A stretch of 64,000 bases of DNA, from assembly GCF_036588685.1 (NCBI RefSeq), contig NC_086377.1:32798001-32862000 (forward strand), written 5' to 3'. Shown piece by piece: positions 1,198-59,500 of the stretch (positions within the stretch are counted from its first letter, which is position 1; every line of letters begins with the position of its first letter). The notes beneath the pieces were generated by a model. That model did no database searches. It saw nothing but the letters and a program-made list of their open reading frames with translations, and was not told the origin of the DNA. The DNA comes from Mytilus trossulus (lineage: Eukaryota). A program made the position numbers and the translations under genes.

Positions 1198-2414
1198 CTA
1201 TAGATACAAAAGTTGGAGGACATTTATAGAAATATACACAAACTGTATATAGTTATAAATACTACAATGCGAAGATGTTTTATTAAATATACTGCGTTTG
1301 CATATTTCATTATTCGTCATGATAACATCACCTGCATATGCATGTCTCTAAACTCACAAGTGTCTATTCAATTACGTATAATTGAGCAATATTATATTCA
1401 GTAATAGAATTTTAACACACAATGTAGCTTAATCTGATACCAGTATCTATAATATAGAATGCGTTACGTCTAATATACAGGCCACATTAATTTTAGAATA
1501 GGTAAATTTCAATTTCATCATTTTTCCATCTGGCACCGATTCCAAATAAATGGTTCACTCGCACTTAAAACTGACATGTCTTAAATTGTGAATGTGACCT
1601 TTCCAAAATATCTGACAACACTTGATTTATATCGTTACTATAGTTTTTTGGTCAACTTAAACCATAACACTTTAATTCATGAACAATAAACGTAGTAAAT
1701 GTACCAGGAGGGAATCAGTCATGAACTGCATAATTTTTCGAACTGCTTCAATGCGTGTAATTTGACGAAATTGAATCTTGTTGGGAGTATATGAAACACA
1801 GAGGTACGTGTGTTTAGTTTGTAAATTAGCTTGATAAATGTCATTCGATTTCATGTGACAAAAAAAAAATCTATTTTATAATTTATACTGGCTTCTACTC
1901 ACAAAATATATTATTCGATATACAATGAATATGTCTTTTAAAAATCTATTACAGTACTTTGAAAATTGTACTACCTCACTCCTTGAATTTTGTGAAAATT
2001 GTGCTGCATGATCTACACTTGTATCTGTATTGCTATACGGACTCTAGTTGATGTTTTTATTTAGCTATGGTGTTTCCTGCTTTTCTTTGAGTTATTGAAA
2101 GATATAGAATCTTTTTGTTCTAAAGCACACATTGTATTATCTTACTATATCTAAACGAACTTTGCACGATCAAGTAAAAAATATTAAATATTATCACGAT
2201 GACGGCTAGTCAGAAATCATAAAAATGTTCGTTAATCATAAAGTGTTGCTAAATACATTTCAATGTATGAAGATGAAGAGCTGAACACGAATACAGCCTT
2301 ATTAGGAGTTTGCAATTAAAAGAAACTAAGTAATAGTCTTTCCGAAAATTATACATTCTTTAGCGATAGATTTATCCCTATTTATTAAAAGCACAAGACA
2401 ATACAATACCCTGA

Positions 2415-2514
2415 GACTGTCATTAAAGTGAGAGGGTGAGCGCTATAGAACCAGGTTTAATCCACCATTTTCTACATTTGAAAATGCCTGTACCAAGTCA
2501 GAAATATGACAGTT
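2415..2514 (+). ncRNA. Twister-like ribozyme motif, P5 permutation, family B (partly mutated)
   Basis: P5 GACUGUCAU/AUGACAGUU; GUGA-GAGGG; palindromes AGCGCU and AACC-A-GGUU; U^AA; UCC; AC; P3 CAUUUUC/GAAAAUG; P4 CCUG/CAGA; L4 UACCAAGU. Confidence 0.7.
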
Positions 2515-2620
2515 CTTGTCCATACATTTGTGATACGTTTTGTTATTTAGTTTTGCCATGTGATTATGGACTTTCCGAATTGATTTTCCTCTAAGTTCAG
2601 TATTTTATTTATTTTACTTT
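2415..2620 (+). mobile_element. Short non-autonomous repeat (family B) carrying the twister-like motif
   Basis: Its 3' part recurs at 5481-5615 (+) and, degenerate, at about 61010-61090 (-). A decayed 5' part is at 3501-3600. Confidence 0.7.
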
Positions 2621-14782: not shown

Positions 14783-17700
14783 TTAAACTGGTACCTTGAG
14801 TATTGATGATTTCTTTGCTTGGTTCTTCTTCAAACTATTCTTCATCAAATCTCCAACAATTGAACCCATTTTGTCTTTCAATTTCTGTATGATACATGGT
14901 TTCACAACTTCATTTTTGTCAGCGATTTTATCATTTGTATTTTTATAACTTGTTGAACATGTTGGATGAAAAGTACTTCCCTTGTTTATTTCTGTTTGAT
15001 TCATACCTTTATTTAGTTTTATGCTTCCACTTTTATTTGAAACATTGTTTCTTTTTGTATTTCTAACAACTGTTTCTAAATCATCTCTAACATTGTCATG
15101 TGTTATTTGTAATTCTTTCATGAACTTCTCACGTTCCTTACATTTAGAACGAGTATTTTCAACAGTGGGTACCACAAATTCTGACACAGCTGCCTTATAT
15201 CCTTGTATATTGTATGGTAACACTTGTTCTGATACACAGGTTTTATCATTCTGTTGTCTGTTTGTCATTTGTTTAGTGTGATCATTAAATTCTTTACTTG
15301 ACACAGGCATTGATATTTCCTGTTGTGAACTTGTTTTGTATTTTTCAAACTTATTTCTTTCCTCAGTTTTTCTCTGTCCTGCCATGTCTGAATTTCGTTC
15401 AAACATTTTAAAATTAGACATGTAAGTATCACAACCTCCATTTTTAGCAAAATTATCCTGAGAATCTGAAGACTCATTGCCAATATATTTGTCTAAATCA
15501 ACACCTTCATAGACTGCTATACTACCTATGCTACTTGTATCATAACTTTCTTGTCTCTTAAACTTGTTTCTCATAGAGCAGTTTTCATCAAGTTCTTTTT
15601 TCTTATCTGATAAATTGTTGGTAGATTCTTTGTTCAGCTTATTTCTCTTTCTTTTAGGAGAGATTGTTTCATGTTTTTGTTTGGGAAAGCTATTAACTTG
15701 CTGTTCTCTGAGTTGATTGGATAGTATTGTTTCGGCCTCTTCAATACCAATGACTTCAAAGTTTTCTATGTTGTCTCTTGATAAATTTTTCTGTGTTTTT
15801 CTTATTGAGTTGTTCCTTGTTTTCCTACTTTTGCTCTTTTTCTTTTCTTTCTCTGGAAAACCTTCGATTGGGGAATCCTTTTGCAAATCATTACGTTGTA
15901 ATCTTGTATTCTTTTGTCTTGGAACCCGGTTTAATTTCACAGTACATTCACTTACAATTATATTTGCAGTTTTATATCTGTCAGGAGATTTTACCGGTCT
16001 GCCACATCGGGTTTTTGGTACAGTGGCATCTACAAGTTTATTGCACGTTTCCAAATTACTTTGTGATACGATATTTTGTTTTTGCACTTTATGTACAGGA
16101 CTTTGACAGACCATTTCACATTCTGTCGAAAACTGATTTTGCATTTTGGGTTTAATATGACCATTTTGTTTTGGCGGTTTCCTACGATTTGCAGGACCAT
16201 TTCTTTTCCTTGGTCTACTCCTTTGAAGCGTTGACTGTGACTTACTTTTGACGTTTTTTGTAACATTTGATAGATCTTCATTCTTTGTTGATAGCTTTCT
16301 TTTCTTTGCTTGTAGAGGACCTACTGATGTTGGTGTAGGTCCATAAACAATTCCTTTTGGAGGCTGCCTCGAATTGAATTCAAGTAATTTTCCTGACTCA
16401 ATTGCTATTCTTTTCTGTGCAATTCGCCGAGTTGCAAATCTTGTCTTATATATTGGACTTTTCAAATTGAAGAATGGCCCCAATGAGGCATATTGAGTGT
16501 TGTGTATTGGACTTGTTAGTCTAAATGAACCTGTAGATTTATGTGATGAGGCATATTGAGTGTTCTGTATTGGACTTGTTAGTCTAAATGAACCCGTAGA
16601 CTTATGTGATGAGGCGTATTGAGTGTTTTGTATTGTACTTGTTTGACTAAATGAACCTGGAGACCTATGTGATGTACGTGGAGGCTTCTGTAATTTAACA
16701 GAACTATTGTCTCTTTCATTCCTCATCCTTTTTTTAGCTAGCCTTTGTGATGCATATCTGGTCTTATATCTTGGACTCTTTATATAGAGTGGACTTTTTA
16801 CAGAAGATCTTTTAGAACTTGTAGTATCTTCAGAAATGTCCAGAGTTGAATGGTTTAAAAGTCCTTGTGTGCGTACATAACTGTCATGAATATTGGGTGG
16901 ACTCACAGTAATGACTTCTTCGGTGTGTAATGCTTCCTTCTCTGATGTACCAATATTGGAATTAAAAACATCTGAATTACGATTTAGTTTTTTCGTTGCT
17001 ATCTTTACCTCTGCATATCTGGTTTTGTAACTAGGACTATTAATTACAGGCATTTTTCCTGATGCAACAATAGGTGTGTCTAGATTGTTTACCTTTTTCT
17101 CGACTAAAGGTTGAAATGTCCTAATTGTTGGTTCTTTCACACAATGTATATCTAACTTTGGAGAAAGGGTTTCAGTAGAAGAATAATCTGTATCTCTGCT
17201 ACTTTTTTCTAACGACTGAGAATTGTTCTTTTTGCTTAATCTATTTATGTTTATACATTGGGAGACTTTTGTTGACGATATCTTTTTATGGGTTTTTAGT
17301 TTACCATTTGATGAGGAGGGTGTCTTTAGTGGAGACGTTTTCTTGATGCTACTTTCTCTACTACTGTTATCACTTGATTTCTTTTTCATCTTGAAATATC
17401 TTCTTTTCACCATTTCTCTAATACTGGCAACCTTGTCTTCTAATACAGAATTATTCTCACCATACTCTTTTCTAATGTTTGAGACAGCTGATTGAAGTGC
17501 TTTAGTTTCATCATTTGAATCCTTTTGATAGAAAGCATTAGATATAAAAGGTCTATTGTTAATTTTGCTGATTTCAAATTTGAAATTCTTTTTCAACCAT
17601 ATTTTTTTCTTCTTCATGCATCTTTTAGTATGCAACTTTTGATGTGGAATGTCAATTTCTATATCACTTTCTATACTAGAGCAATTATCTGTCATTAGAT

Positions 17701-20700
17701 TATCATCGTCTAAAATGCTACCATCCTCAGATTTACCACTTACAGGACTGTACATACAACTAGCTCCCTGCAGGGTATTTTCCACGCTTGAATTATCGTC
17801 CTCATAACCAATATCCCAGAAATAATCGTGGTCAAAATTGCTTTCTATGTCTGACGAGCAGCTATTTTCAGAAAGAGTCCTCTCTGGTGTAGCATCATCG
17901 TCTGGAACAGTACTATCATCAGCGAGATAACTGCCATGGCTACTCAGTGATTTACGGTCATCGCTATCTATACTACTACAATCTTCAATAGTAGTCTGAT
18001 CAGCCAGGTCATTATCTATGCTGCTACATTCATCAAAAGAACTGCAATACCCCAACATTGGATTTGCAAGAAAAAATGAAACGTTCTGATCAGCTTTAAT
18101 AAAAACACCATCTTTTTGTTTTTTCTTCTTACTAAAACTAATTTCATTATCACTGGATTCAACATTCTGATCAGCTTTAATAAAAACACCATTGTTTTGT
18201 TTTTTCTTCTTACTGAAACTAATTTCATTATCACTAGAATCAATATTCTCATGTGTTTCCTTTGGTGCCCTAATAGTTATTTTAATATTTGGCCGCTTAA
18301 AACTTATTTCAACTTCACTGTCACATGTATCAGACTCTTTTGTCTTTTCAAAACCTCTTTGAGGAGAACTTCTTTTTTTCACAATGTCTCGACTCGCAAA
18401 ACTTATTTCATTTTCACTATCATAGCTTTGTGAATTTTCATGACCATTTCTAATCTTTTTCTTGATGTCTGACTTCTGAAAAATCCTTTTTTTATGAGAC
18501 TGAATAAATGATTTAAATTGGGTCTGTTTATCATCATGAATGTTGTCATGGTAATCCGAGCTATAATTAGACTTTGGAGAGAGACAAGCACTTGATTGAA
18601 GTTTGGGTCGAAATTGCTTACAGATTTCAGTTTTGCCAGAGAAATATTTTCCTAATAAGTTTTCTGACATGTTTTGTCTAAATTTCCTTTCCTGGTCAGT
18701 TTTATTTTCATGAAGAAGACTTGACCCCTTTCCAGTAAATTGTCCCCTGAGATTGTCATTTGGATTCATACCATACATTTCTAAATTCTGATTTTTATTT
18801 TGCATTTGTTCTATGTAGTTCATCCTAGATAAAGAAGAAGCATCATTTCGAATTATATCTTTAGTAAATCTGCCTTTAGTGGCAACAGTGTGCTTAGACA
18901 TGTCTTGAAATAGACTAAAATGTGAAGCTCCATTTTTTACATCCTCTTCTTTTTCAGAATGAAATTTAAGCATGGTATCCTGTTTATCAATAGTATGTTT
19001 TAATTGAAAGTTAGGTGTGTTCGAATTTTTAACATGGCCAAGCTGGCTTAAATCATTATTCAGATTCTCGTCTTTGGTAATGTAAGAACTATTGTCTGGG
19101 TTTACAGCTTTTAAACCAATATGACTCCCAGAAGACATAATACTCCGACCAGATAATCTCCTTCTTCTAGGTTTTGAATCTGTACTGTCATCAGAAAATT
19201 CACTTATATCAATGTTTTCGAATAATGTGATATGCTGGGGTGATGGCCAAGATAATAAATTGTCAGTTCCTGCATAATTAGAAAGTTTCGGCAAATCTAT
19301 CATTTGATCACCAGCTTGATTCAATCTGCCATATTCACCTACACCTGTTGAGTTGAAACTTCCTTGTAATGGCTGATTTATTGTATTCATACGATTTTGC
19401 AATGACCTGACAGTACTACTCACTCCATTTTCCCATAGTTCTAAATGTTCTTCAAATTTGTTGTACTTATTAAAACTAATATCTGGCTGAGTTGAAATTT
19501 TGGGATTTTTTCCTTCTAAAGTTTGTCTATTTTCATATAAAAACTCATTCTGTTTAAGATCCTCTAGCTTTCCAAATAACAAAAATGAAACTGGACCTTT
19601 TTGAGATGAATCTAATTCGATGTTCATTTCATCAGTTTCTCTATGACCTCTATTTGACATTGGATGAAAATGTTTGACTGCTTCGTTGTCTGTATCCTCA
19701 TCATCCGTAGATACGGTAGATGACATACCCTGTTCATCAGAGGTGGCGAGAACATAAATATCTGTCTCAGAATCCATCATAGAGGAGACTGTAACAGTAT
19801 CTGACTCATTCTCTTCTGTTGATGTCTCCTCTGTGGAACACGTTGAAGGTGACCTTGTAAGCTGAATCCCACTCAAACCAGTATGCATATGTCTGATGTG
19901 AGTTTTTAATTGATTGTGCTGTCCAAACCTTGCATGGCAAAGTTTACAAGAAAATGGTCTGGGATGCTTGTGAGTCCTCAAGTGCATTCGTAATTCATTG
20001 TCAAATTGAAATGCACTTGAGCAAAAGTTACACCCAAAAGGCTTCTGGCGTGTATGTTGCAATAAATGAGCATCTAAAAGAGGCTTTTGCATGAATTCTT
20101 TATTGCAAATGTCACATTTGTACGATTGTTTATGATGATTTCCTTCAGAAAGTTTTGATGAGTTTCTGTGTGTCCCATGTTCCTCAATTTCATGTCCTTT
20201 CAGATCAGAAATACTTTCAAAGTATCTGTCACAAAAATTACATGGAAACATTGTTAGTTCATGTAATTTCTTGTGATCTGCTAACCATCCTTTATCTAGA
20301 AATGTCTTATTGCAGATATTACATATATACTGTTCAGGTGTGGACTCTACTAGCTCTGAACATTCAACCGACAACTCATCTGAATCAGCAGGATCATCAA
20401 AATGTTTCAGTCTGTGCATATTTAGTTTGACCATTGATGTGAAAGCCGCAGTACAGTGATCACAAACATGATTCTTACTGTTTTTATGCATTCTATTTTG
20501 ATGTATACGTAGATTTTTTATGGTTGAGTAACTTTTAGAACAGAATCCACATTGATATGGAGTATTTCCTGAATGAACTCGTTCATGGATAAGGAGACTC
20601 TCCTGATTTAGGAATTTCCGATTGCAAAGATTACATTTGAAGTGGTCTTCTCCATTCTCATGCCATTTCATATGTGTTCTAAAATTACCTACCCTTATAA

Positions 20701-20965
20701 AACTTTTATCACATTGATCACACTTATAAGCTTTTTCCTCCTGAGAACTTTTTATTTGTTCTCCATGTGATGAGGTATCCTGTTCAGTGTGTGCACTTGC
20801 CTGATGAAGGATAAGATACTGTTTATTAATGAATGCTGCAGGGCACTGTTCACATCTGAATCTAAATTCAGTCGGCTGATTCTCATGAAGGTCAAGATGA
20901 TTTTTCAGTTCAGTCGGCTTGGAAAATCCAATGTTACACAAGGGACAACCATATAGCTTATCCAT
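14783..20965 (-). CDS. 2060-aa C2H2 zinc-finger protein (11 N-terminal fingers, long low-complexity tail), single coding exon
   Basis: Uninterrupted 6.18-kb ORF. 11 CxxC-x12-Hxxx(x)H fingers in the first ~363 aa, with HSGNTPY and HTRQKPF linkers. Acceptor ttttacag at 20995-21002 and an in-frame TAG just upstream of the ATG. Confidence 0.95.
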   Translation of the reverse strand: MDKLYGCPLCNIGFSKPTELKNHLDLHENQPTEFRFRCEQCPAAFINKQYLILHQASAHTEQDTSSHGEQIKSSQEEKAYKCDQCDKSFIRVGNFRTHMKWHENGEDHFKCNLCNRKFLNQESLLIHERVHSGNTPYQCGFCSKSYSTIKNLRIHQNRMHKNSKNHVCDHCTAAFTSMVKLNMHRLKHFDDPADSDELSVECSELVESTPEQYICNICNKTFLDKGWLADHKKLHELTMFPCNFCDRYFESISDLKGHEIEEHGTHRNSSKLSEGNHHKQSYKCDICNKEFMQKPLLDAHLLQHTRQKPFGCNFCSSAFQFDNELRMHLRTHKHPRPFSCKLCHARFGQHNQLKTHIRHMHTGLSGIQLTRSPSTCSTEETSTEENESDTVTVSSMMDSETDIYVLATSDEQGMSSTVSTDDEDTDNEAVKHFHPMSNRGHRETDEMNIELDSSQKGPVSFLLFGKLEDLKQNEFLYENRQTLEGKNPKISTQPDISFNKYNKFEEHLELWENGVSSTVRSLQNRMNTINQPLQGSFNSTGVGEYGRLNQAGDQMIDLPKLSNYAGTDNLLSWPSPQHITLFENIDISEFSDDSTDSKPRRRRLSGRSIMSSGSHIGLKAVNPDNSSYITKDENLNNDLSQLGHVKNSNTPNFQLKHTIDKQDTMLKFHSEKEEDVKNGASHFSLFQDMSKHTVATKGRFTKDIIRNDASSLSRMNYIEQMQNKNQNLEMYGMNPNDNLRGQFTGKGSSLLHENKTDQERKFRQNMSENLLGKYFSGKTEICKQFRPKLQSSACLSPKSNYSSDYHDNIHDDKQTQFKSFIQSHKKRIFQKSDIKKKIRNGHENSQSYDSENEISFASRDIVKKRSSPQRGFEKTKESDTCDSEVEISFKRPNIKITIRAPKETHENIDSSDNEISFSKKKKQNNGVFIKADQNVESSDNEISFSKKKKQKDGVFIKADQNVSFFLANPMLGYCSSFDECSSIDNDLADQTTIEDCSSIDSDDRKSLSSHGSYLADDSTVPDDDATPERTLSENSCSSDIESNFDHDYFWDIGYEDDNSSVENTLQGASCMYSPVSGKSEDGSILDDDNLMTDNCSSIESDIEIDIPHQKLHTKRCMKKKKIWLKKNFKFEISKINNRPFISNAFYQKDSNDETKALQSAVSNIRKEYGENNSVLEDKVASIREMVKRRYFKMKKKSSDNSSRESSIKKTSPLKTPSSSNGKLKTHKKISSTKVSQCININRLSKKNNSQSLEKSSRDTDYSSTETLSPKLDIHCVKEPTIRTFQPLVEKKVNNLDTPIVASGKMPVINSPSYKTRYAEVKIATKKLNRNSDVFNSNIGTSEKEALHTEEVITVSPPNIHDSYVRTQGLLNHSTLDISEDTTSSKRSSVKSPLYIKSPRYKTRYASQRLAKKRMRNERDNSSVKLQKPPRTSHRSPGSFSQTSTIQNTQYASSHKSTGSFRLTSPIQNTQYASSHKSTGSFRLTSPIHNTQYASLGPFFNLKSPIYKTRFATRRIAQKRIAIESGKLLEFNSRQPPKGIVYGPTPTSVGPLQAKKRKLSTKNEDLSNVTKNVKSKSQSTLQRSRPRKRNGPANRRKPPKQNGHIKPKMQNQFSTECEMVCQSPVHKVQKQNIVSQSNLETCNKLVDATVPKTRCGRPVKSPDRYKTANIIVSECTVKLNRVPRQKNTRLQRNDLQKDSPIEGFPEKEKKKSKSRKTRNNSIRKTQKNLSRDNIENFEVIGIEEAETILSNQLREQQVNSFPKQKHETISPKRKRNKLNKESTNNLSDKKKELDENCSMRNKFKRQESYDTSSIGSIAVYEGVDLDKYIGNESSDSQDNFAKNGGCDTYMSNFKMFERNSDMAGQRKTEERNKFEKYKTSSQQEISMPVSSKEFNDHTKQMTNRQQNDKTCVSEQVLPYNIQGYKAAVSEFVVPTVENTRSKCKEREKFMKELQITHDNVRDDLETVVRNTKRNNVSNKSGSIKLNKGMNQTEINKGSTFHPTCSTSYKNTNDKIADKNEVVKPCIIQKLKDKMGSIVGDLMKNSLKKNQAKKSSILKVPV

Positions 20966-21833
20966 TTTGAAATATGCTTCCTATTTTGTAGTTCCTGTAA
21001 AAAAAATAATGTAAATATCAATGATTCTTGGATATCAAATAAATATGAGAAATTTAACTTAGCTAAGAATAGGTTAAACATAATGCTGTTCCATAATTTA
21101 TTTCTTTTATTTTAAAGATATTTTGCCATTCAAAATTTGACAAAAAAAAACAGTCTAGATTTTATTTTTTTTAAGATTGAAACCTTTTCTAATTCAATAA
21201 CTTTGAAAAATAAAAGAATAATTTCTCCATGGGACACAGATGATGCCCTGCTGGAATAAAACTAAAAAATATAAAGGGCCATACCTCGAGAAAGGTAAAA
21301 GTGGTGCCACTTAAATTTGATCTAGATCTGAATTATGTGGTAATAAACATTGTATACAAGTTTCATATTCTTTGGTTGAGTCAAACTAAACAACCATTGT
21401 AGTATCAAAGTTTAAAATGGACCCACTGGACCATAATCATTTGTTACAGTAATGACTACCAATTTGAAAATGGGACCCAAAACAAAGAATCTTAATTCAC
21501 GGTGACAACAACTATGATGACAGCATATACTTATAAGCCACAAACCTTTGCTGTTGTATAATAAAATTATAAAAGAAAATCTGGTTTGAAAGTAGGTAAA
21601 ATTGAGAATGGAAATGGGGAATGTGTCAAAGAGACAACAACCTGACCAAATAAAAAAACAACAGCAGAAGGTCACCCCAACAGGTCTTCAATGTAGCGAG
21701 AAATTCCCACACCCGGAGGCGTCCTTCAGCTGGCCCCTAAACAAATATATACTAGTTCAGTGATAATGAACGCCATACTAATTTCCAAATTGTACACAAG
21801 AAACTAAAATTAAAATAATACAAGACTAACAAA

Positions 21834-21924
21834 GGCCAGAGGCTCCTGACTTGGGACAGGCGCAAAAATGTGGCGGGGTTAAACATGTTTGTGAGATCTC
21901 AACCCTCCCCCTATACTTCTATCC
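21834..21924 (-). ncRNA. Twister-like ribozyme, P5 permutation, family A, in the 3' region of the element
   Basis: GGGG GAGGG U UGAGAUCUCA C AAACAUGUU U^AA CCCC GC CACA-UUUU-UGCG CCUG UCCCAAGU CAGG A GCCUCUGGCC. Same strand as the RT. Predicted cut between 21881 and 21880. Confidence 0.8.
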
Positions 21925-22236
21925 AATGTAGAAAAGTAAACGCATAACAATACGCACATTAAAATTCAGTTCAAGAGAAGTCAGAGTCTGATGTCAGAAG
22001 ATGAAACCAAAGAAAATAAACAAAATGACAATAATACATAAATAACAACAGACTACTAGCAGTTAACTGACATGCCAGCTCCAGACTTCAATTAAACTGA
22101 CTGAAAGATTATGATTTCATCATATGAACATCAGGCACCATCTTTCCCGTTAGAAGTTTAGTATCATACCATCATAACATATATGAGAAGAACATAACCC
22201 GTGTCATGCCAACAACTGTTTTTAGAATAAATGTGT

Positions 22237-23240
22237 TTAGTTCCGACGCAAAGACCTTATCAGTGACTCAATATTAACGCCAAAATATGCAATCTTTAAT
22301 GACTTGACAACAGTATCGTATTTATATCCCTTCTTAATAAGTATATTCAAAGGTTTTGTAAGTTTCTGAGGTGAATACTGACACCTTTGTGCTTTATAAA
22401 GAATATTTCCATAAAAAAATGGATGTGAAATACCTGAACGTATAAGAAGTCTGCATGTTGAGCTATATTTACGAATGATGTCTTTATACTGATGATAAAA
22501 TTTAGTAAACATGGTAAATGTTTTGACTAGTTTGTGATATCGAAAACCCTGGTGTAATAATTTTTCAGTAATACATAAATTTCTCTCGTTAAAATCTAAA
22601 ACATTGTTACATACAAGAGCAAATCGTACAAGTTGAGATATATAAACACCGTAAGATGGTGACAAGGGAACATCATCATCTAAAAACGGATAATTAATGA
22701 TAGGAAATGAAAAATCATCCCTTTTATCATAAATTTTAGTATTCAGCTTTCCGTTAGTGATATAGATATCAAGATCGAGGAAAGGGCAGTGGTCATTGTT
22801 AGTATTAGCTTTATTTAAAGTATTGCAATACTCATAGAATGCTTGTAATCTTATAAGTAAGTTCAGCAGGATAAATTTCATGAATATACATACTGAAGTC
22901 GTCATTATTGAGAGCCAAAGTATCCTCCAAATATCTAAAAGTATTATTGAATTTGTTTATCAGATGTTGTTTTGATGGGTCTTTGCTTATTTTTGTCATA
23001 AATTGTAACTCATAACAATACAAAAGGAGGTCCGCAATAAGTGGTGCACAGTTAGTCCCCATTGGAATTTCCATAATCTGACGATATACAAAGCGAACAA
23101 AAATGTTATCTAGTAAAAATTCAAGGGCATATATAGTATCAAAGCATGTCCAATTAACATAGTTTTTTTGTTTATTGCTACTAAAAAATGACCTAAAAGA
23201 GTTTGAACATATATATTCACATTCTGAAACTTTTTTATGG
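22237..23240 (-). pseudogene. Disrupted Penelope-like reverse transcriptase
   Basis: Split over ORFs 22832..23293 and 22237..22905 by an insertion/frameshift near 22830-22860. The catalytic DD is altered to ED. Confidence 0.88.
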
Positions 23241-23395
23241 CTACACATGGATGTGGATGTAAGCAGATCTAAAGGATTCAGAAAATTTGACAAACAGTCA
23301 AAAACAAGATATTTTTGGTCTTTTGATTGATTTCAGCCATTTCAATTGATATTTCATAATGTGTCCTTCCATGTGTGATGTTAGTATGCACTATT

Positions 23396-23700
23396 GTTTC
23401 AGGTAAGGGTGATGGTTTTGTACCATCAAATGTTTAAACCACAGCAATTGCACCTGTGCTAAGTCAGTAATCTGTGTTTCTAGTTTCTTGTTGTATATAT
23501 ATATTTTACAGTTTGAATGGTATTACACTAGTAACTTTTGTGGCCCTTTATAGCTTGCTGTTCGGTGTAAGCCAATGATCCTTGTTTAACATGTTTAAGA
23601 TCAAACTTTCATCTATCATGGTTTACTTTTACAAGTTGTGACTTGGATGGAGAGTTGTATCATCTGCACTCATACCATATCGTATCTTCTTATATCTATG
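23396..23700 (+). mobile_element. Family C short repeat with a decayed twister-like motif (23396-23475)
   Basis: gggtgatggttttgtaccatcaaatgtttaaaccac-agcaattgca-cctgtgctaagtcag. Homologous to 56232-56501 (-) and sharing the terminal gagagttgt...cataccatatc segment. Confidence 0.65.
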
Positions 23701-31300: not shown

Positions 31301-31771
31301 TAAAATTGAGAATGGAAATGGGGAATGTGTCAAAGAGACAACAACCCGACCAAATAAAAAAACAACATCAGAAGGTCACCAACAGGTCTTCAATGTAGCG
31401 AGAAATTCCCGCACCTGGAGGCGTCCTTCAGCTGGCCCCTAAACAAATATATACTAGTTCAGTGATAATGAACGCCATACTAATTTCCAAATTGTACACA
31501 AGAAACTAAAATTAAAATAATACAAGACTAACAAAGGCCAGAGGCTCCTGACTTGGGACAGGCGCAAAAATGCGGCGGGGTTAAACATGTTTGTGAGATC
31601 TCAACCCTCCCCCTATACCTAACCAATGTAGAAACGTAAACGCATAACAATACGCACATTAAAATTCAGTGCAAGAGAAGTCTGAGTCTGATGTCAGAAG
31701 ATGTAACTAAAGAAAATAAACAAAATGACAATAATACATAAATAACAACAGACTACTAGCAGTTAACTGAC
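31301..31771 (-). mobile_element. 5'-truncated copy of the Penelope-like 3' region (family A)
   Basis: Nearly identical to 21597-22071, with the same 3' terminus. Confidence 0.9.
31536..31624 (-). ncRNA. Twister-like ribozyme, P5 permutation, family A, core fully intact
   Basis: P5 AGGU/GCCU; P2 GGGG/CCCC; GAGGG; U^AA; GC; P3 CGCA/UGCG; P4 CCUG/CAGG; L4 UCCCAAGU. Predicted cut between 31583 and 31582. Confidence 0.82.
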
Positions 31772-56231: not shown

Positions 56232-56501
56232 AAGTAAGATGTGGTGTGCGTGCCAATGAGAATACCCTCCATCCAAAAAACAATTTAAAAAAATAAATAA
56301 AGTTAACAATTATTTTCGGCCTTCTAGTGTAAAACCATTCAAACGGGAAAACCAACGGTCTAATCTATATAATAAAACGAGAAACGAGAAGCACGTATAC
56401 ATTACATAAACAAACGACAACTACTGTACATCAGATTTCTGACTTAGGACAGGTGCAAACATTTGTAGCGGGGTCAAACGTTTTAATGGATCAAAACCTT
56501 C
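56232..56501 (-). mobile_element. Family C short repeat with a twister-like motif (56431-56501), 5'-truncated
   Basis: GAAGG UUU UGAUCCA UU AAAACGUU UGA CCCC GC UACAA-AUGU-UUGCA CCUG UCCUAAGU CAGA AAUCUGA. Ends in the ...cattggcacgcacaccacatctt terminus. Confidence 0.7.
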
Positions 56502-59500
56502 AACGATTCAAACGGATATTCAAGATTTGTTCGTGACATTTGACATAACAGCATTTATTGTGAGATCCCTAGGTGAAATCGACAATATTCTTCACAATCT
56601 CAACAATTGTATTCCACTACTCATTATAAATAGTGATTTGTACATTTATCATGTTTATAAATTCAATATATTATGAATGGTAACTCCGTGATTAATATTG
56701 CTACTCGCCGATTCTCGCACGGATAGGTATTTACGAAAATGCAACTATTTCTTTGGTTGCACATCTTACGTATTTTTGAAATGAAAGTAGATGTTTAACC
56801 CTTGATATTGATATCTAGGACTATATGATACAACATAATTATACATCATAATTCTAAGTTCATGTCCTCAAATTACGTATTGATCAAAAATTGATAAATA
56901 CCTTGAAAAATTATTAAAATTTAAACAAGGTCAAAACAGTACTTGCTTATCGTAAAGAAAGAACATCGTATTAGTTAGAAAGAGGTGACGATAAGAACGT
57001 ACTGATGCAACACACGAATTATTGTCTTGTCTCCTTTTTATGGACCGAGCTGGTTTCACAGTTTTGTTACGTAACAACCAGTTTGCGGACGAGAATATTT
57101 GTTCTGACGGTTCAAGTTGTAGAGAATTGTTAAGTTGTGTTTAACCAAAAAATGTAACCCTTGAGTCAACATTCAGGCAGTTATAACACACAATCTCTTT
57201 CGTTTAAAATCTTAAATTCAATCTATAAAATATTTGCTTAATACAATCTTGAAAATGCGTACATATATGAAAGTATAAAGAGTAAAAGTCCCTTTTCTCA
57301 TGAAATAGTTTTTACAGATTATTTTCGATTTTCCTTTTTCCTTGTTATGGTATTCCTTATTTAACTTAATAATTGAAATTTTTTTCAATTATATTGAATG
57401 CACCTATCACATTTAACCCAAAACGAAGACTACTACAGAAACAGTCTAGTTCGTCTCCTATCCTAACATATAAAGAGACTGTTATGATCTAATTTTGTGT
57501 AAAAGACAGTAAATTTCAGCTTCCAGTTTCGAAACTGTCCAGTAATATCTTGCAAGAACATGACGTCATATAAATAAAATCTTACAAACTGATGGTGTTT
57601 AAGCTACCTCAACGATTCCAAAACAATTGGATACATTTAGATAACAATTTGTAACTTGAGATTGGCTTGTTTTATTTTGGATAATATTGTAGTAATCTTA
57701 CATTTTTTGAAATTCAAAATGGCGGGACCCTCCTAAGTTACGTCAAGTCAACTGTGGATTTGACTGCAAATTGTAGCCAATGAAAACCACTCTCACATGA
57801 ACATTGCACTAAAAAGTACAATTAACCGGTAGTTGTATCGAACTTGTGCTAGAGAAATGAAATATGCATAGACTTGTAACGTTTTTATGGTTTAAAACTT
57901 CATTTTGAAAGCTCATAAAAACAAAAGAAAAACCATTGACGTAGAACTAGCAGAACAAGTGTTATTTAAAAGCTATTTATATATAGTATATGGCTGTTTG
58001 GAATTCTTCAATCGATTGAGAAAAAAACCAAATCTTGTTTACAAAGTAAAACAGAGGGAAACACATCAAATGTAAAAGAACAACGACACAACTGAAACAC
58101 AACATAAAAGAACAAAGTAAGTGTGTCGTATCATGCATTTAACAAACTATTGCTAGATCACACTAAGATGATTAACTATTGCTTAAATAAATTATGATAA
58201 ACACTGTTGACTAGATTTGCATGGTCTTTTATGTTTTATATAGTAATGTAGAATACCCTACAAAAAGTACAAGTACGACTAGCGCACATACATGACAAAT
58301 CTTGAAAGTAAACTAAACTGATCGCCATGATATAGTCAAGTTTACTGAAAGAGTCATTAAATAAAAATAAAAAACCCACCCTAGGATGCATACAATTCCA
58401 AACTGTACATAAGATCACTTTCAATGTCGTTCTCGTGTTAATTTTCTTTAAAACATGTACTGTTAACCCCGGCTAACCATACCGTCATATATCAATGTTA
58501 TCAGCAAGTATTGTATATGACCGTGACATATATTAGGATTAGAATTACATTTCGAAAGATGTATGTATCGATATACAACTTTAGCATTTTTATATTGTTT
58601 AAAGTTTAATATTTTGATCTTGGTTTAATATTTTTGATTAATAATTTGACACTCTAGTATTATTTGATGTTACATAGTTTTACATATATTCTCAATTTGG
58701 CCGTTGTTTTGATGAATTTGACGTACAGTAAAGATGTATTCACATTCTGTTTTTTTTTATGAAACTGTCTACTAATATTTGTACTTGACACTGTCCAAAA
58801 GTGGAATTTCCATTTTCTGAAAAGTAGATTTTACAATAACTGAAATTATAAATTATATTGTAACAAATACAAATGTAATTAAATTAATCAACTGTCCAAT
58901 TTGTTTTCTTCCTGTATAAATATTGAAGGATGTGACAACAATCAGTTTTATTCTAATTTTTCCTGGTGTTTTGGTACATTAGTTAATTTGTCAAATAGAT
59001 TCATGAGTGGTTCTCGTATCTCCTTTTGATATAGATTAAACCAATGGTTTTTTTCCGTTTGCATGGTTTTACAATTAGTAAGTTGTGGGACCCTTTATAG
59101 CTTGCTGTTTGGTGTGAGCCAATGCTTTGTTTAATTTAAAAGTATATTTTCTTATTATTTGGAGTGAATATTACTATCAGTTCAACAAAGGTCCTCCCGT
59201 GCATTTATTGAACCACGGACGGGTCGAAACAAAACCTTAAAAAGTTTCGATTGACCGGTTTTCCGTTGTTGCTTTCCAACATTTTTTTGTATGGTGTATG
59301 AAAAATCTTTCTTGATTGTTTTCCATTTCAAAAGAATTTCGTTTCGCTACAGTAGTGCAAAATGATCTGTATCACTTGCCATACGAAGACGCAGTCAATA
59401 AAAAAATCTCACAATCGGGGATAAAAACCCAGCAAAATTGGTCAAAATTACAGGTTAATCAAATATGACATCGACGAATTTGTTATACTATCGATATTGG

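Follow-up and report, generated by a model that had tools for sequence, protein, structure and literature searches.

The twister class of self-cleaving RNAs was reportedly described by Roth et al. in 2014. Twister variants occur at the 5' end of the Perere-3/RTE non-long-terminal-repeat retrotransposons of Schistosoma mansoni, where variants with poor pairing of helix P1 cleave in vitro and serve the retrotransposon (PMC8501958), and PMC7761336 also notes twister at the 5' end of RTE elements. The minimal hammerheads of Penelope-like elements (PLEs) reportedly act as dimers (Cervera and de la Pena 2014; Lunse et al. 2017; both as reviewed in PMC6765202). Naiads, the PLEs whose diagnostic features include a CxC linker, a DKA motif and an N-terminal GIY-YIG domain, lack canonical hammerheads, and their description reports no ribozyme and does not mention twister (Craig et al. 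2021, PMC8557442). Here we analysed a window of 64,000 nucleotides from the mussel Mytilus trossulus (NCBI RefSeq assembly GCF_036588685.1, contig NC_086377.1, positions 32,798,001 to 32,862,000 of the forward strand; coordinates below are those of the window unless a locus is named), which carries a dead copy of a Naiad-type PLE on its minus strand. We give a probability of roughly 0.6 to the reading that this copy contains a twister-class RNA in its 3' region, in which P1 has been replaced by dimerising palindromes and which does the job of the hammerhead.

A sequence-only reading of the window had placed a twister core in the P5 permutation at 21924-21834 of the minus strand, about 310 nt past the stop codon of the reverse transcriptase (RT). 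Every element that it named was found at its position, and the distance is 313 nt from the stop (TAA, 22239-22237). The parts of the motif are as follows.

21834..21924, minus strand: whole twister-type motif in type-P5 order (RF02684, 23.1 bits; our own models R1 and R2, 144 and 106 bits)
21924-21916, minus strand: 5' strand of P5, GGAUAGAAG, pairing with 21842-21834
Between the 5' strand of P5 and the 3' strand of P2, minus strand: UAUA spacer, as read from the sequence
21911-21908, minus strand: 3' strand of P2, GGGG, pairing with 21878-21875
21907-21903, minus strand: catalytic strand GAGGG, the first G being the presumed catalytic guanine; its GGG forms pseudoknot T1 with CCC of L4
21900-21893, minus strand: palindrome 1, 8 nt, GAGAUCUC, after UU, in the place of P1; AC separates it from palindrome 2
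21890-21881, minus strand: palindrome 2, 10 nt, AAACAUGUUU, its last letter being the U 5' of the predicted cut
21881/21880, minus strand: predicted cleavage site U^AA, at the position homologous to the U^AA of twister
21880-21879, minus strand: AA after the predicted cut, as read from the sequence
21878-21875, minus strand: 5' strand of P2, CCCC, pairing with GGGG at 21911-21908
21874-21873, minus strand: GC of pseudoknot T2, pairing with the last two letters of L4
21872-21861, minus strand: P3 hairpin, in which A at 21871 breaks a pair in the window copy
21860-21857 with 21848-21845, minus strand: P4, CCUG/CAGG, covarying across families
21856-21849, minus strand: loop L4, UCCCAAGU, matching the Rfam twister consensus
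21842-21834, minus strand: 3' strand of P5, CCUCUGGCC, after AG, pairing with 21924-21916

The motif shares with twister type P5 (RF02684) the order P5, P2', GAGGG, P1 region, U^AA, P2, GC, P3, P4, P5'; its L4 loop resembles UCCCAAGC of the twister consensus, all core letters match, and both T1 and T2 covary. It differs from that type in having, in place of the P1 hairpin, two even palindromes 2-4 nt apart, as well as in the constant presence of P3, a long P5 (15-27 bp) and a score below the cut-off. Like the twister variants of Perere-3 (PMC8501958), it is a twister-class RNA with weak or missing P1 that is borne by a retrotransposon and transcribed with it. However, the Perere-3 variants lie at the 5' end of an element of the long interspersed nuclear element type, have type-P1 order, release the 5' end and cut where the target-site duplication abuts, whereas the Naiad motif lies in the 3' region of a PLE, has type-P5 order and shows no insertion boundary at the cut site. 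With the dimeric PLE hammerheads, as reviewed in PMC6765202, it has in common a small motif in the terminal-repeat or 3' region, frequent tandem arrangement and a weak, palindromic helix at the cut site; the ribozyme class is different, and dimer action in Naiads is suggested by the palindromes. In the excerpts of PMC6765202, PMC7761336, PMC10085705 and PMC13725137, PLEs are named only with hammerheads or in reference lists, and the titles and abstracts of other literature naming twister and Penelope-like elements do not link the two. No paper in the literature searched, which leaves most subscription journals outside it, joins twister with Naiad, and within the same limits both the pairing of twister with a PLE and the use of palindromes for P1 appear undescribed.

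Two changes in the window copy each break a pair: positions 21871 (P3) and 21917 (P5) are both A, where about 87% and about 98%, respectively, of the RNA reads of the family have G. In a search of a 211-nt stretch, Rfam Twister-P5 (RF02684) aligned to 21845-21911 of the minus strand (23.1 bits, E 0.005) with every conserved position matched, and a majority-type copy received the same score. The match is seen only at this short search length: it is not listed in an 8-kb search of the same region, a whole-genome search with RF02684 returned nothing, and there is no twister call at the curated Rfam thresholds. The Twister-P1 model gave partial matches in other families. A pattern of the core matched twice in the 64-kb window versus not once in 100 shuffles, and had no match in viral contigs. 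Folding of the single strand of the window copy is no better than that of shuffles (z +0.96); pseudoknots and two broken pairs lead one to expect this, and the result carries no weight.

The window copy belongs to a family that we call A. Three more motif-bearing families in the same genome (B, D and E) carry compensating differences: family B has P2 as GGGA/UCCC, GAAGG together with L4 UCCU, and a P3 and P5 that differ from those of family A yet remain paired; family D has its own P3 and P5; and family E, which is old, has GAGGU with L4 UACC. Searching the genome with our own model returned family A only. For independent lineages, a profile made from 41 RT sequences of Naiads was run against JGI and ENA metagenome contigs, yielding 80 Naiad contigs whose protein identity is 40-99%. 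Among them, a covariance model that combined families A, B and D gave approximately 30 matches, and a second model, built from the matches of the first, detected the motif in 35 of these 80 marine metagenome contigs. All matches lie on the coding strand downstream of the RT, at an offset from the stop codon that is constant within clades, and the motif is present in 14 of the 16 contigs that have at least 700 nt after the stop and at least 50% protein identity. The GA of GAGGG and the AA after the cut are invariant in the 35 model-aligned metagenome copies, and the invariance of these catalytic letters holds over families with protein identity down to about 43%. Judging from these comparisons, a large group of Naiads has inherited the motif and kept it under selection in the 3' region.

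Helices and pseudoknots covary: P2, P3, P4, P5, T1 and T2 all show compensatory changes across families. In an alignment of 44 sequences with 21 pairs, 90.7% of cells are standard pairs versus 69.7% after shuffling (reached by none of 500 shuffles), and the covariation score is 0.485, versus 0.163 for shuffles; sliding the partners by 1 to 3 columns lowers it to 0.047 or less. Of the 21 pairs, 18 vary on both sides, T1 and T2 included. The nested helices are part of the search model, and the set is therefore biased towards them; T1 and T2 behave like the nested helices although they are outside the model. A second count, parsed by unpaired anchors only, comprised 29 distinct cores and 2000 shuffles. 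In this parse, P2 is 83% paired versus 63% in shuffles, P4 97% versus 77% and T2 95% versus 75%, with no shuffle reaching any of the three observed values, and T1 is 86% paired versus 81%, a value reached by 45 of the 2000 shuffles. Depending on the family, the last pair of P2 is G-C, A-U, U-A, C-G or G-U, the first pair of T2 is G-U, A-U, C-G, U-G or G-C, and P4 is CCUG/CAGG, ACUG/CAGU, ACCG/CGGU, GCUG/CAGC or GCAG/CUGC. T1 varies little, its first pair changing from G-C to A-U and its third being A-U, U-A or G-U, in the combinations GAAGG with UCCU, GAGGU with UACC and GAGGA with UUCC. Across families, P3 has a mean z of -5.3 against shuffles, with all 4 outer pairs varying on both sides, and the P5 duplexes have a mean z of -4.8. 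We regard it as very likely that a homologue of the twister fold is conserved in Naiads.

Four further copies of the motif are present in the window, at 31511-31637 (minus strand), 2402-2539 (plus strand), 23382-23505 (plus strand) and 56403-56527 (minus strand). One belongs to family A and has an intact P3, and three are decayed members of other families, one of them with UAA changed to UGA. The family E repeat is old and abundant; its L4 is UACCAAGU and pairs with GAGGU, its P5 has 8 bp and its P2 is bulged. The repeat was read at 2402-2539 of the window and at the loci L044:2572-2699, L008:2545-2674 (minus strand) and L007:384-518 (minus strand).

The part in which the motif departs from described twisters is P1. 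A canonical P1 in cis is absent, the letters after GAGGG and before U^AA not being complementary. In its place, all families have UU, an even, GC-rich palindrome of 6-12 nt, 2-4 further nucleotides and a second palindrome that extends up to the nucleotide 5' of the cut. The first palindrome exists in at least 17 different versions, and its central four letters are always self-complementary, which a hairpin loop would not need and hence does not explain. In some families the second palindrome is kept by G-U pairs, which points to RNA rather than DNA pairing. RNAcofold predicts homodimers to be 8 to 17 kcal/mol better than two monomers. From their letters, the palindromes would be incapable of folding back and able to pair between two copies. 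We also observed that the GGUU (GUU in family A) following GA(G) can pair in cis with AACC (AAC) in the first half of palindrome 2, at 21903-21890 in the window and likewise at loci L075 and L085, and that this pairing is seen in predicted folds. Such pairing of the T1 strand with palindrome 2 is possibly an inactive monomer fold that dimerisation would open.

We propose the following arrangement. The long P5 would close the motif, and P2, P3 and P4 with the pseudoknots T1 and T2 would build the twister core, placing the catalytic G and the A after the cut in position, so that the RNA would be a self-cleaving ribozyme in which two self-complementary segments replace P1. A stable helix beside the cut site would then form only when two copies, either as units within one tandem transcript or as separate element RNAs, pair through both palindromes, setting a helix with swapped strands against each cut site. 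Multimeric or read-through transcripts could in this way be cut to unit length, possibly with formation of circles, a role that would be equivalent to that of the dimeric minimal hammerheads of other PLEs. The individual parts of this proposal differ in standing. That the motif cleaves in some context we hold to be somewhat more likely than not. That the ribozyme needs dimerisation we put forward tentatively, leaning slightly against it. The fuller version, in which Naiads carry an obligate-dimer twister with a strand-swapped substitute for P1, cleave, and perhaps religate to circles, only when two units meet, and use the palindromes also as a dimerisation signal, seems to us somewhat more doubtful still.

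The class of the element was settled through homologues, motifs and fold, because Pfam and PDB sequence searches with the family's own protein pieces gave nothing significant. A whole unit of 4.03 kb could be read in a head-to-tail pair, L044. It consists of a 5' region of about 360 nt and one long frame, interrupted solely by four TGA codons, that encodes, in this order, a Cys-rich finger, a GIY-YIG-like core with CCHH, CxC, DKA and the RT; CxC and DKA (instead of DKG) were read directly in both L044 and a second locus, L046. The in-frame TGA codons stand at conserved cysteine positions (L044 8064, 8157, 8190 and 9465; family loci L044:7899-10000 and L046:4557-6617), and one of them, immediately after ...ADKAANNIIIV, bounds upstream the 480-aa frame described below. 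A selenocysteine insertion sequence (SECIS) follows the stop codon in the intact copy (L044:6930-6994; Rfam SECIS_1, 32.8 bits, E 0.0011). A protein search found 4348 homologues. Of 19 homologues of the N-terminal piece, 8 match Pfam GIY-YIG (best E 1.7e-5); the family's own N-terminal piece has no Pfam match, and Pfam RVT_1 matches to the RT are weak. The ten best PDB matches of an AlphaFold model of the RT (pLDDT 84.6) are all telomerase RTs, as expected for a PLE RT, the sister group of telomerase. The open reading frame (ORF) stops about 190 residues past the RT core without a C-terminal endonuclease, and the features of canonical PLEs (Penelope/Poseidon, Neptune and Nematis), namely a C-terminal GIY-YIG domain and a hammerhead in the terminal repeat, are absent; Rfam finds no hammerhead in the full unit. 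Head-to-tail tandems with a period of 4.02-4.03 kb are common, and the flanks of the element are AT-rich. The unit thus has the size and arrangement of Naiads, which measure 3.4-4.4 kb, form tandems, have AT-rich or (TA)n targets and lack a canonical hammerhead. The sequence-only reading had called the element a likely Naiad from an RT ending without GIY-YIG and had seen no hammerhead in it; the N-terminal GIY-YIG, CxC and DKA of L044, the telomerase-like RT fold and the Rfam search agree with it on both points. That the element is a selenocysteine-type Naiad is supported, as an assignment by domains, motifs and fold rather than by an RT tree.

The closest described relatives are the selenoprotein Naiads of clams and spiders (PMC8557442), which share the order of N-terminal GIY-YIG/CCHH, CxC, DKA and RT, the TGA positions, the SECIS past the stop, tandems, AT-rich targets and the lack of a hammerhead. 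Three of our four TGA codons lie at the cysteine positions of Craig et al.: one ahead of GIY, one at the first cysteine of CCHH and one eight residues past DKA. Selenocysteine Naiads were described from clams and spiders only (Craig et al. 2021, PMC8557442), whereas the present element comes from a mussel. Many marine metagenome Naiad contigs have SECIS_1 at 23-33 bits, just under the Rfam cut-off, right past the RT stop (L104:945-1005, L082:2825-2891 and L075:2825-2887; also L076, L070, L057, L085 and L114), and selenocysteine use may be widespread in this group. Arrays of at least three full units with a period of 4.01-4.02 kb occur at G000:C10:32727881-32736600, C14:74288158-74296885 and C13:47963166-47971017; such arrays would fit multimeric or rolling-circle templates. 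A public protein (P0181), annotated as 'sulfotransferase 1A1-like [Mytilus edulis]', is 84% identical to 13% of the Naiad N-terminal piece; its gene model has probably taken in part of a Naiad.

In the window, the element copy comprises the following features.

21597..23240, minus strand: dead, 5'-truncated Naiad-type PLE copy of family A, delimited by alignment to 29 other genomic copies
22237..23227, minus strand: RT coding remnant, with stop TAA at 22239-22237 and ORFs 22237-22905 and 22832-23293
22121..22185, minus strand: decayed SECIS in the 3' untranslated region (Rfam SECIS_1, 19 bits)
21597..21833, minus strand: 3'-terminal part of the element, downstream of the motif, present in all copies to 21597

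The 29 fetched genomic copies, 94-98% identical to the window copy, share a common 3' end at 21597, and their homology starts at variable points between 21964 and 23234, the combination of fixed 3' end and variable 5' starts that marks 5'-truncated retrotransposition. Since all copies continue to 21597, the motif, which lies 284 nt from the 3' end of the element, is part of the element and not a separate insertion. A query of 161 nt retrieved at least 1485 candidate copies in the 1.3-Gb genome, the best of them 98-99% identical; the window copy belongs to a young and very abundant retroelement. The copy itself is dead: it is truncated within the RT, its frame is broken and its SECIS is decayed, with reads disagreeing with it at 22139, 22143, 22154 and 22155. 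Relative to nearly all other copies and to RNA reads, it contains an insertion of 37 nt at about 22818-22854 (in alignments with other copies the breaks fall at 22822/22851, and RNA reads skip from 22817 to 22855), which splits the RT frame into two overlapping ORFs; many copies have over this coding region the single open frame of 480 aa that is found in intact copies. The stretch GGGUUGAGAUC had also been considered as a short interspersed nuclear element derived from tRNA; this reading was dropped, as the stretch lies within the 3' region of the element and the element has its own RT. Directly downstream of the copy, on the same strand, the window carries an ORF of 2060 aa with many N-terminal C2H2 zinc fingers (14783-20965, minus strand).

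Over the element, three RNA runs from 2026 that carry the same species label reach depths of about 20 to 1400, with reads on both strands. Coverage increases in the 3' direction, in parallel with the copy number of truncated copies, and both RNA and contig depth peak over 21597..21833, as 5'-truncated copies predict; loose read ends past 21597 are AT-rich. In none of the three runs do read ends pile up at 21881/21880, where depth is 380 to 720 (the threshold for a pile being one fifth of the neighbouring depth), in libraries not made for 5'-OH or 2',3'-cyclic phosphate ends and with reads that stem from thousands of copies, most of them dead. These reads do not support efficient cleavage in bulk RNA. 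The absent pile speaks against an efficient constitutive cis-cleaver and is neutral for a conditional one, since solitary dead copies within other transcripts must be the source of most reads.

Together with the missing pile of read ends, several observations weigh against a dimer-acting twister that takes the place of the hammerhead. Where the sequence-only reading had looked to Rfam twister models, the match of all conserved positions stood and the score did not, 23.1 bits lying under the RF02684 gathering score of 37.6; RF03160 likewise gives 23-24 bits against a gathering threshold of 67.2. Of the 13 contigs that have less than 50% protein identity (40-49%) and a flank of at least 700 nt past the stop, 4 have the motif and 9 lack it; in these distant Naiad-like contigs without the motif Rfam finds neither twister nor hammerhead, and the motif is not universal in Naiads. 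One large clade has lost the third pair of T1 on both sides (U-U), and the same clade has a conserved C-A or C-U mismatch or a bulge in P2. None of the best 40 tandem-junction matches starts at the cut site (one starts 43 nt further on), so that cleaved RNA has left no footprint as a template, such as the insertions beginning at the cut site that prove cleavage for Perere-3 in Schistosoma (PMC8501958). Finally, the geometry of the dimer is a proposal reasoned from the sequence. The low Rfam scores could also be those of a chance look-alike of twister in a young, abundant repeat, and the family A copies, being 94-99% identical to one another, add no independent information on this point. The comparative data reject this explanation and make it hardly credible, as the motif recurs in families and contigs whose proteins are 42-84% identical, its strand and position relative to the RT are constant, and the both-sided changes in 18 of 21 pairs include two twister-specific pseudoknots.

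The remaining alternatives accept the twister fold and differ in what it does. An RNA derived from twister that no longer cleaves might be kept as a 3' handle for the RT and endonuclease in target-primed reverse transcription, or for dimerisation. Such a handle would account for the absence of an end pile at the predicted site, for the clade with mismatched P2 and weakened T1, and for the fact that all insertions run 284 nt past the motif to a fixed 3' end, which means that their template was uncut there. In the twister class, however, the first G and the A of GAGGG and the AA after the cut have a catalytic and not a folding role, and a scaffold would not need the invariance that these letters show; other PLEs, moreover, keep active ribozymes at the equivalent place (PMC6765202), and we consider a non-cleaving handle unlikely. 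An ordinary monomeric twister, cleaving in cis without P1 and with palindromes that serve separately in packaging or template switching like a retroviral dimerisation site, appears to us a shade less likely than the handle. GC-rich even palindromes do resemble dimerisation sites, and the core nucleotides and all core helices of the motif are intact across families. Some twisters, in addition, can do without P1. Variants with up to four mismatches in P1 are active in vitro (PMC8501958). Yet an efficient cis-cleaver should leave a pile of read ends and a drop in spanning reads, neither of which is seen at 21881/21880, and palindrome 2 lies right against the scissile U in all families, at the place of the 5' strand of P1, an arrangement that links the palindromes with the active site and not with some separate function. 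We therefore retain as preferred reading the twister-class RNA with P1 replaced by dimerising palindromes.

Few retroelements of marine invertebrates are as abundant as Naiads, and their lack of a hammerhead had put the relevance of ribozymes to these elements in question. Annotation could assign a label to thousands of copies in each genome, which would explain recurrent twister-like matches in mollusc repeats. If the preferred reading is true, twister would gain a second class of retroelements, together with a large natural set of sequences missed by the standard Rfam thresholds, and the palindromes in place of P1 would be a natural case of a twister that is possibly gated by concentration or by dimerisation. 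Were dimerisation obligate, the Naiad motif would be convergent with the dimeric hammerheads of other PLEs and the first natural twister regulated by its oligomeric state. With a twister-class motif conserved where other PLEs have their hammerhead, the ribozyme would have been swapped rather than lost in Naiads, which would argue that self-cleavage has a genuine function in the PLE life cycle.

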